From Macrostomum lignano (taxonomy: Eukaryota): a stretch of 64,000 nucleotides of DNA. Below, piece by piece: positions 34,401-37,400 of this stretch. The notes below the pieces were generated by a model. That model had not been told where the DNA came from. It was given only the letters and a program-made list of their open reading frames with translations, and searched no databases. The stretch spans positions 62,001-126,000 of the forward strand of contig NIVC01000884.1 of assembly GCA_002269645.1 (NCBI GenBank). Direction: 5' to 3'. The position numbers and the translations under genes were made by a program. Positions within the stretch are counted from its first letter, which is position 1. Each line of letters begins with the position of its first letter.

Positions 34401-37400
34401 TGCCTCTCTAACTTGACAGCTTGCTAACCGAGTACAGGAAAACTAACACAGATCTGTCACAACCTGCGCGCCTTGCAGATGCTTGCCTGACACCGCTAAC
34501 GGCTCAACCGCTGCCACTCCTCGTGACTGCGCAGAGTTCTTAAGTAATACGGGGATGGTCAGAACCGTTTGATTTATTTAGATGACACTAAATGACAATA
34601 GAAAACAGTAGATGACATTAGAAATCATTAAAATGTTAGAGAACCTTAGATGACATTAGAAAACATTGAATGAGATTAGAAGATTTTAAATAAAATTAGA
34701 GAACATTAGATGACATTAGATAACATCGACTGTCTGCATAGATAGATAGATAGATAGATAGATAGATAGATAGATAGATAGATAGATAGATAGATAGATA
34801 GATAAATAGATAGATAGATAGATAGATAGATAGATAGATGGATAGATAGATAGATAGATAGATAGATAGATAGATAGATAGATAGATAGATAGATAGATA
34901 GATAGATAGATAGATAGATAGATAGATAGATAGATAGATAGATAGATAGATAGATAGATAGATAAATAGATAGATAGATAGATAGATAGATAGATAGATA
35001 GATAGATAGATAGATAGATAGATAGATAGATAGATAGATAGATAGATAGATAGATAGATAGATAGATAGATAGATAGATAGATAGATAGATAGATAGATA
35101 GATAGATAGATAGATAGATAGATAGATAGATAGATAGATAGATAAATAGATGGATAGATAGATAGCAGCCTTCTTTTGTCTGACATTTATCCTACCCAGG
35201 GCTCATACATACCTGTGTTACCGCCCGTCTCTATTTCACGTATCCAATCAAGAATCCATAACAATCCAATGGAGTCCAATAGTCGCTAATGACCAGCTGC
35301 TATCTGAAAGCAAGGACTCAAATCTCCTGTTGCCAGATATTCAATCTATCATAGATAGATAGACAGTAGAAGGAGCATTAGAAAGAATAATGGACGTATG
35401 ATAAATTATAGTTTTGCACTAATCAAAAATGAAAGAAACGTTATTAAAGCAGACTTGCCCTATTTAATTGTTCCAAACTCAGCCATATCATTGATTTTAT
35501 ACGACAGCGTACTTGTCAAGCCGGTCAGTGCGACAAACAGACAGACTGCTGACTAGCGTTGCCATAGGCACAGCCTGTTGCGTCATTGGTGCCCTTTTCT
35601 TGTTGGCCTGGTACCTTGCCAGGTTTGTAGCCGTATATAATGCTCACCAAATTGCTGTGTCTCTTAATTCGATCTTAACCTTATTTAGAATTTCAATGTC
35701 GTGCGTCAAGTTTTACGTTCAAGCGCATATTTTTCGCTTACTATTAGTAGTGTACTAAAAATATTTATAGTATAGCTTGCACCTAGTAATTATTTATTTT
35801 TTATGCCTTCAATTATCGTGTTGTTACATGTATTTCAGAAGGCGCCGCAGTTTACCAGAGCCAGGCAGCGGTAGCCGCGCCCATTTCCTCCGCCGCCCTT
35901 GGTGTTGTGTTCGTGGCGGTCTTTGCCGTCCTAGCTATTGTATTGCTGTCCGTCTGTCTGATGCTTTACAAAGTGTAAGTGGGTGTTGTTTATAGAGAGT
36001 TTTTATGTTGTAAAATCAGCTTTGCACTCTACTTGCAGTAGCGATTGTTGCTAATTTAATATTTCGTTTCTGTGTCGGATTCGCTAAACTATTGTACCAT
36101 TGTATTTTCTATTCTTATTATAGAGTTCTATAGCAATAAAATTGAGAAAGCTTCACAGTAAAACTGAATTCTCAAACTTCAGGCGTCGAAGATTGGACAG
36201 GCGACTAAGAAGGTCTCGACTGTCATCTAGGTGCGACAATGTGGTATGTCACTTTTTGAGCAGTTTTTACTCGTATATAGCTATGCTTGCTTTGCCCATT
36301 ATAGGGGAACTTTCGTGTAGTGTTGTGTACTAAACATATACATGTACGCTCGATAGTAGCAAGCAAAGTACCAGTACGAGTAAGGATCTAGTACCGACCA
36401 ATGATAGCTGAGTGAACTGAGCACCACCTCAATTACCTCTCTACCCCAATTCAGTATGGTCTAAGTCAACCAATGATAACTGAGTGAACTGAGCGCCATC
36501 CCCATTCCCTCTCTACCCCAATTCAGTATGGTCTAAGTCAACCAATGATAACTGAGTGAACTGAGCGCCATCCCCATTCCCTCTCTACCCCAATTCAGTA
36601 TGGTCTAAGTCAACCAATGATAACTGAGTGAACTGAGCGCCATCCCCATTCCCTCTCTACCCCAATTCAGTATGGTCTAAGTCAACCAATGATAACTGAG
36701 TGAACTGAGCGCCATCCCCATTCCCTCTCTACCCCAATTCAGTATGGTCTAAGTCAACCAATGATAACTGAGTGAACTGAGCACCACCTCAATTCCCTCT
36801 CTACCCCAATGCAGTATGGTCTAATTCAACCAATGATAACTGAGTGAACTGAGCGCCATCCCATTCACCCATTACCTCTCTACCCCTGTAGGTCTTGTGC
36901 CAACAAATCATAGCTGAGTGAACTGGGAACTACCCCGTCTTCTCTCTACCCATGTACATTGCTTCAAAACGCCAATGCATAAACAGAAGAAAACAAAATA
37001 TTTACTATTAACTTCCAGGAAACTCAGTACCCCAGCAACGGCACGGCAACCCTGACAGACGTTGCAACCATGACTGAAACTCCGGCTGAGACTTTAAAAA
37101 TTGAACCGCAGCGTCAGGAGAGTCAGCAGCCGAAACAGTCGCAGCAGATGGAGCTGCACCGCCTGCCAGACAGCGTCAGCACCAACGGTGCTCATCCACC
37201 GCCAAGGTTGCCCCGGACGTCAAATAGCTTCCGCCCGCAGCAGCAGCAACAGCACACCATAGACTACGCTGGCCTGCCAATCCGACCCATATTTGACTAC
37301 TCGGGCGGACTTCACCGGGATGAAAGCGCCGATCTACGCGCAGAGCTTGGCCTGTTGAACCAGTTGGAACGTCGGCAACTGCAACAACAGCAGCAGCAGC

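Follow-up and report, generated by a model that had tools for sequence, protein, structure and literature searches.

Two stalk and transmembrane exons, probably alternative anchors, in a neuregulin-type gene of Macrostomum lignano

The DNA considered here (the window) is a stretch of 64,000 nt from Macrostomum lignano, positions 62,001 to 126,000 of the forward strand of contig NIVC01000884.1 in assembly GCA_002269645.1. It is eukaryotic, repeat-rich DNA, and the gene that concerns us is Mlig015540, of which the window holds the copy called g3. Between 35508 and 35974 this gene contains two exons, A and B, and we think it probable that these are alternative stalk-plus-transmembrane (TM) exons, of which B is the dominant one and A the ancestral one, the latter probably still in use. 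When eight exons of the window are joined, with v1 as the exon for the C-loop of the epidermal growth factor (EGF) domain and B as the TM exon, the protein obtained has 561 residues and is the same as PAA75429.1 (copy g3) throughout. From its N-terminal domain the product runs through an immunoglobulin (Ig) domain and an EGF domain to a TM segment and a tail. The features are listed below; the eight exons of this exact reconstruction are all those listed other than v2 and A.

25441-25957, + strand: exon 1, with the start codon, signal peptide and N-terminal domain
30649-30814, + strand: Ig domain exon 1
32429-32544, + strand: Ig domain exon 2, from the annotated acceptor
32764-32878, + strand: common EGF exon (Cys1-Cys4), exit phase 2
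34250-34299, + strand: EGF C-loop exon v1, canonical Cys5-x8-Cys6, in all deposited models
34479-34543, + strand: EGF C-loop exon v2, Cys5-x15-Cys6, unannotated, phases equal to those of v1
34738-35165, no strand: (GATA)n microsatellite, intronic, between v2 and A
35508-35622, + strand: exon A, basic stalk and neuregulin TM helix ending WYLA/R, unannotated in Mlig015540
35839-35974, + strand: exon B, Ala-rich stalk and longer Val/Leu TM helix, the TM exon of all deposited models
36183-36243, + strand: exon C, polybasic stop-transfer segment
37019-37543, + strand: exon D, Gln-rich cytoplasmic tail and stop codon

The architecture and alignments of the predicted product support Mlig015540 as a neuregulin-type EGFR ligand gene, as a preliminary description of this DNA had proposed. 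An I-set Ig domain (PF07679, 35.1 bits against a cut-off of 23.7) lies N-terminal to an EGF domain which, with v1, has six cysteines spaced C-x5-C-x5-C-x10-C-x-C-x8-C; the Pfam EGF score is 15.5 bits, below the 21.5 cut-off. The second Ig exon has another in-frame acceptor AG at 32399, 30 nt upstream, which would add 10 residues and with which the I-set score drops from 35.1 to 28.3 bits; the deposited models take 32429. Exon 1 has a weak similarity to NRG2_N (PF25518; 17.2 bits, E=0.006, below the cut-off), and its region aligns with the N-termini of mollusc and annelid neuregulin-like proteins. In the A form and the B form alike a single TM pass is followed by a polybasic juxtamembrane segment, and exon C has its counterparts in other neuregulins in the segments ARRRRHRYLRRR and KRQRKK.

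An exhaustive HMMER search gave single-stretch matches over query residues ~37-426 to proteins of Patella, Haliotis and Gigantopelta, with E ~4e-21 to 4e-20; of these, the first two bear the name pro-neuregulin-1 and the third is 'uncharacterized protein LOC121379914'. The alignment with the mollusc 'pro-neuregulin-1, membrane-bound isoform-like' proteins is end to end, and the best Dreissena and Owenia stretches, in the same search with the annotated protein, end at the Ig domain. With the full-length protein from the window exons as query, a single database cluster was matched, M. lignano hypothetical protein BOX15_Mlig015540, that is, the v1-B cluster only. A Pfam scan of the window gene product gave no match to the neuregulin intracellular domain PF02158 at E<=1, and the Gln-rich tail looks lineage-specific. 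No paper in our literature search mentions 'Mlig015540'.

Exon A is 115 nt long, preceded by cgacAG and followed by GTttgt, and exon B is 136 nt long, between tttcAG and GTaagt. Both lengths are 1 mod 3, so that each exon is entered in phase 1 and left in phase 2, and either one alone can be followed in frame by the polybasic exon C, which starts at 36183. When A and B are joined together, B is read in a different frame, as RRRSLPEPG..., which ends inside exon C with KKVSTVI and a TAG stop at 36228-36230; when both are skipped, the frame also stops early, in exon C. As far as the reading frame goes, then, A and B have the form of a mutually exclusive pair: the same flanking exons fit either, and having both in or both out breaks the frame. 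The helix of A, behind a basic stalk, is ~25 residues long and that of B, behind an Ala-rich stalk, ~29, with maximum 19-residue Kyte-Doolittle hydropathies of 2.25 and 3.25. The GC content of A is 0.55 and that of B 0.57, versus 0.31-0.37 in the flanking introns. On all of this, from the coordinates, AG/GT sites, phases and joins to the stalk-and-helix content of each exon and the frame shift when both are used, the preliminary description was right.

Its view of B as unrelated to A was supported as well. The similarity scores given here come from a block-preserving shuffle in which stalk and TM helix blocks are kept separate, and by this measure A and B have no detectable similarity (z = -0.4 to -0.7), so that the homology of a tandem duplication is not seen. 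Such homology is typical of mutually exclusive exons, not obligatory. As to RNA pairing that might enforce exclusion, intron-to-intron duplex energies were no better than those of shuffled sequences. A 16-nt inverted repeat, 81% complementary, brackets B, with one arm at 35709-35724 in the A-B intron and the other at 36150-36165, just before the acceptor of C; it could loop out B.

Which of the two exons is used? All six deposited proteins of Mlig015540, from two annotation efforts (three models in GenBank, two in UniProt that come from the older ML2 assembly, and a fragment), run from v1 to B to C, and the RNA-seq-derived models have the junctions 34299-35839 and 35974-36183. The main isoform of the whole animal is therefore anchored by B, which is used without A. 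The preliminary description had taken A for the normal exon and B for the one needing proof, and the data show the reverse, B being in all the models and A in none. It had also named, as outcomes that would count against it, B being unused or being read only after A in a cytoplasmic frame; the models use B without A. Its neuregulin assignment and its view of B as a TM exon were thus borne out, whereas the roles it gave to A and B, and the exon it took for the EGF exon, were not. StringTie and TACO were run on RNA-seq to build the GenBank annotation; TACO was set to --isoform-frac 0.75, and a further filter on alternative transcripts preceded submission (PMC5730564). Since the TACO filter removes minor isoforms, the lack of A in the annotation says little.

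The exon that had been taken as the EGF partner of both anchors, ending at 34543, is the non-canonical C-loop exon v2. The canonical v1 had been overlooked, and the annotated junction into B leaves from 34299, not from 34543. At 50 nt and 65 nt, v1 and v2 are both 2 mod 3 with the same phases, each codes for Cys5-Cys6, and used together they lead to a stop in v2, so that they have the properties of a neuregulin alpha/beta-type alternative C-loop pair. The loop of v2 is of 15 residues and is without the usual aromatic and Gly residues; the exon is 100% identical in the two other copies of Mlig015540. For comparison we took 26 mollusc and annelid neuregulin-like isoforms from seven species in five genera (Patella, Haliotis, Gigantopelta, Dreissena, Owenia). 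Each gene in this set has two alternative EGF C-loops, an arrangement thus found also in five mollusc and annelid genes, and one invariant TM anchor. Because two C-loop variants occur in every mollusc and annelid gene compared, the choice between v1 and v2 looks like an old neuregulin feature.

The same proteins bear on the ancestry of the anchors. Exon A is similar to the TM regions of four mollusc and annelid neuregulins, with z=5.5 for Owenia, 4.2 for Gigantopelta, 3.7 for Haliotis and 3.1 for Patella, in keeping with its earlier description as neuregulin-like, and to the A-like exon of the M. lignano paralog Mlig001833 with z=11. The mollusc and annelid anchors, of which DRTFVVVGIVSGIILFITICVVSYFLARRRRHRYLRRR is an example, share a motif, DR(T/V)...(S/A)Y(F/Y)(L/M)(A/S)(K/R)R(Q/R)(R/K), that A joined to C matches, and A retains its length, phases, splice dinucleotides and motifs (DR.L...WYLA/RRRR). 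B was tried in the same way as a homolog of A or of anchors from other neuregulins. Against some targets z was 3-4 with a simple shuffle, and these scores were largely gone under the block-preserving shuffle, where the best are 2.3 (Owenia) and 1.8 (a second M. lignano paralog); homology of B is not established. Since A resembles the mollusc and annelid anchors and B does not robustly do so, A is, judged by these likenesses, the ancestral, canonical neuregulin anchor exon.

Mlig001833 (locus L003; proteins P0016 and P0158) is 41% identical to Mlig015540 overall and has v1-like, v2-like (CLIVSNETAENCVEFQ), A-like and C-like exons in the same order. Its A-like exon is exactly 115 nt long, with the same phases and the same split codons as A. 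The v1-like exon (L003 16204-16257) runs into an in-frame stop after CEKIDIY, giving the secreted model P0016, and the v2-like exon (L003 16857-16905) is used in model P0158, which joins the EGF exon to the v2-like exon and this to the A-like exon. It follows from the stop in the v1-like exon that the canonical EGF loop of this paralog would be only secreted, and that a membrane form must use the v2-like and A-like exons. The 945-nt A-to-C intron of Mlig001833 contains no B-like TM exon.

Between A and the A-like exon of Mlig001833 amino-acid identity is 46%, versus 41% for the whole protein, and at the three codon positions identity is 0.43, 0.68 and 0.35, a coding pattern with synonymous sites saturated. 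A of Mlig015540 has therefore stayed a coding sequence over most of the period that separates it from Mlig001833. The second paralog (P0010/P0157) has an anchor that looks weakly B-like, the z of 1.8 being that given above; no GenBank version of it was found in a protein search.

More recent constraint can be looked for among the copies of Mlig015540 itself. Besides g3 there are two more, g1 at locus L001 and g2 at locus L002, with ~97-99% identity outside the repeats. In all three copies the A peptide is identical and its AG and GT sites are kept, and the frame through A, B and C is open until the stop in exon C. Among the three, 2.6% of sites vary in non-repeat intron, and 1.1% in annotated exons. 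In v2 and A together there is one variable site in 180 nt, versus ~4.7 expected at the intron rate (P ~0.05); this lone change is synonymous in the anchor frame, and neither exon has an indel. The pattern weakly supports recent constraint on v2 and A. Array sequence diverges far more among the three copies than unique intron does, by 5-12% versus 1.3-2.6%.

How then are A and B to be read? That they are alternative anchors, the reading we hold to be probable, draws on the exact translation of the v1 and B exons to PAA75429.1 and the use of v1 with B in six models; on the similarity of A to the paralog and to mollusc and annelid anchors, with its coding pattern, exon-like GC and the low variation in v2 and A; on the matching A-like exon of the paralog and its use in P0158; and on an annotation filter that drops minor isoforms. 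Several points weigh against it. Database protein searches found neither A nor v2 in any transcript-derived or predicted protein of Mlig015540. These negative results are themselves weak evidence, because a word-indexed search with a 294-residue v2 and A query returned only NRG2a of Esox (E=2e-3) and missed known models, including P0001, which shares >200 identical residues. The splice signals of A, its donor (GTTTGT) and its pyrimidine tract, are weak. P0158 may be an ab initio prediction and not a transcript-based model, and the copies, with differences of only 1-3%, afford little test of recent constraint (P ~0.05).

The same points lend themselves to another history, in which B has replaced A as the sole anchor, and A, perhaps with v2, is an unspliced relic that has not decayed. 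The absence of A from all six models of two annotations and its poor splice signals would then need no further explanation, and the three copies are too alike for decay to show yet. A relic of this kind should not, however, match an old paralog as well as the remaining parts of the protein do, with length, phases and AG/GT sites exact despite saturated synonymous sites; nor do the fewer changes in v2 and A than in the introns, the synonymous nature of the only one, the lack of indels and the exon-like GC of A suit it well, and minor isoforms are discarded by the annotation pipeline in any case. We consider such a replacement possible but doubtful.

A further alternative is that A and B are normally spliced together, A being the anchor and B, in its other frame, the short cytoplasmic tail that ends in KKVSTVI. 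The open frame to the exon C stop in each of the three copies fits this, and so does the position of that stop, 13 nt before the last exon junction: by the 50-nt rule, a stop so near the last junction should escape nonsense-mediated decay. The RNA-derived models, however, have B without A and in its TM frame, where it encodes a very hydrophobic helix of 29 residues, and a second open frame over 45 GC-rich codons is not unusual. As the normal arrangement this seems very unlikely to us; the form with A and B could occur as a third, minor isoform. That A and B are meaningless open frames in an intron can be dismissed, for although ~8-9% of random 1-kb sequences of the same composition contain a single TM-like AG..GT segment that is open and in phase, only ~0.3% contain two, B is in deposited coding sequences, and A is homologous to anchors in other phyla and to a paralog exon.

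With A and B read as alternative anchors, what might the splicing do? The deposited models show transcripts with B only, and the A-type join is seen only in the paralog model P0158; that A and B exclude one another would follow from reading-frame logic together with the conservation of A. The isoform that has A would be a minor or restricted one, in which A is probably paired with v2, as in P0158, and B skipped. Use of either A or B, both being 1 mod 3, would keep the long tail; use of both would give a 66-residue tail ending STVI, and the KKVSTVI end of this form resembles a class I PDZ-binding C-terminus. Use of neither would give a soluble EGF protein. The choice between A and B would swap a stalk of ~20 residues, the site of neuregulin shedding, together with a helix of 25 for one of 29 residues, and from general knowledge of neuregulin processing such a swap should change cleavage efficiency, membrane sorting or both.

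It is possible to go further and suppose that splicing is coordinated at two distant points, so that v2 with A and v1 with B make two ligands that are distinct in their receptor-binding loop and also in whether or how they are shed. The combination of v1 with B is the only one seen in Mlig015540, and that of v2 with A the only membrane form possible in Mlig001833. We regard coordination as a tentative and rather unlikely extension. If it were true, the gene would offer a switch between tethered and released neuregulin in particular tissues or in regeneration.

Is there a parallel in known systems? The mollusc and annelid neuregulin-like genes share with Mlig015540 the N-terminal, Ig, EGF and TM segments, the alternative C-loop exons and an anchor of the A and C type; they differ in that the TM segment is invariant within each gene and no B-like exon is present. 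Among their 26 isoforms we found no alternative TM anchor and nothing resembling B, which agrees with the earlier remark that no such TM arrangement was known in neuregulins. Of the species checked, M. lignano alone showed a second anchor exon. Vertebrate NRG1 and NRG2 have the Ig domain, EGF domain, stalk, single TM segment and polybasic segment in the same order; the TM region of Esox NRG2a aligns with the A form (RVLT.../RLLT...), and the pair v1 and v2 has its counterpart in the mutually exclusive C-loop exons alpha and beta. NRG1 is not known to have more than one TM exon. Mlig015540 differs from the vertebrate genes in that stalk and TM are exchanged together as one exon, and in that PF02158 is undetected. 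Human NRG1 is described as modular, with alternative N-termini, alpha and beta EGF exons, linkers that include a terminating one giving soluble forms, and alternative tails, and with cleavage by ADAM and BACE1 in the stalk (PMC11360300).

Outside the neuregulins, the case for comparison is Dscam1 of Drosophila, an unrelated protein and a receptor rather than a ligand. Its exon cluster 17 consists of two exons, 17.1 and 17.2, for the TM and juxtamembrane segment, and the choice between them affects dendrite or axon targeting. The cluster is one of four that are mutually exclusively spliced (PMC1397879, PMC8042237). Unlike this case, Mlig015540 has no detectable homology between A and B, and no RNA-pairing signal was found between its introns.

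The neighborhood of the gene adds some observations. Upstream on the + strand a neighboring gene has two pieces of an adenylate/guanylate cyclase catalytic domain (PF00211) at ~10876-11058 and 18353-18568 of the window, and the cyclase neighbor is also upstream of copy g1 in L001. Downstream, at ~51755-52836 (+), there is a UDPGP-family gene (PF01704, 33 bits) whose product resembles a UDP-sugar pyrophosphorylase; beyond it a (CTGT)n array spans 5.5 kb (52849-58370). Two tandem arrays with a 151-nt period, in opposite orientation and ~300 nt apart (47057-47545 and 47850-48338), hold mirror-image open frames of 116 codons at 47121-47468 (+) and 47927-48274 (-); the + frame, the only one of the pair scanned, had no Pfam match. 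Mini- and microsatellite density is extreme, with 59 TRF rows in the window, and some of these arrays lie within introns of the neuregulin-like gene.

The public annotation of Mlig015540 omits the ancestral anchor exon, together with one EGF-loop exon, and the deposited protein shows just one of up to four in-frame membrane forms. The sequence comparisons suggest that alternative EGF-loop exons are old in neuregulin-type genes. M. lignano is a regeneration model in which transgenesis works (PMC5730564). Neuregulin signalling hinges on the anchoring and cleavage of the precursor, and two stalk-anchor modules behind one EGF domain, if both are in use, would be a ready-made experiment.

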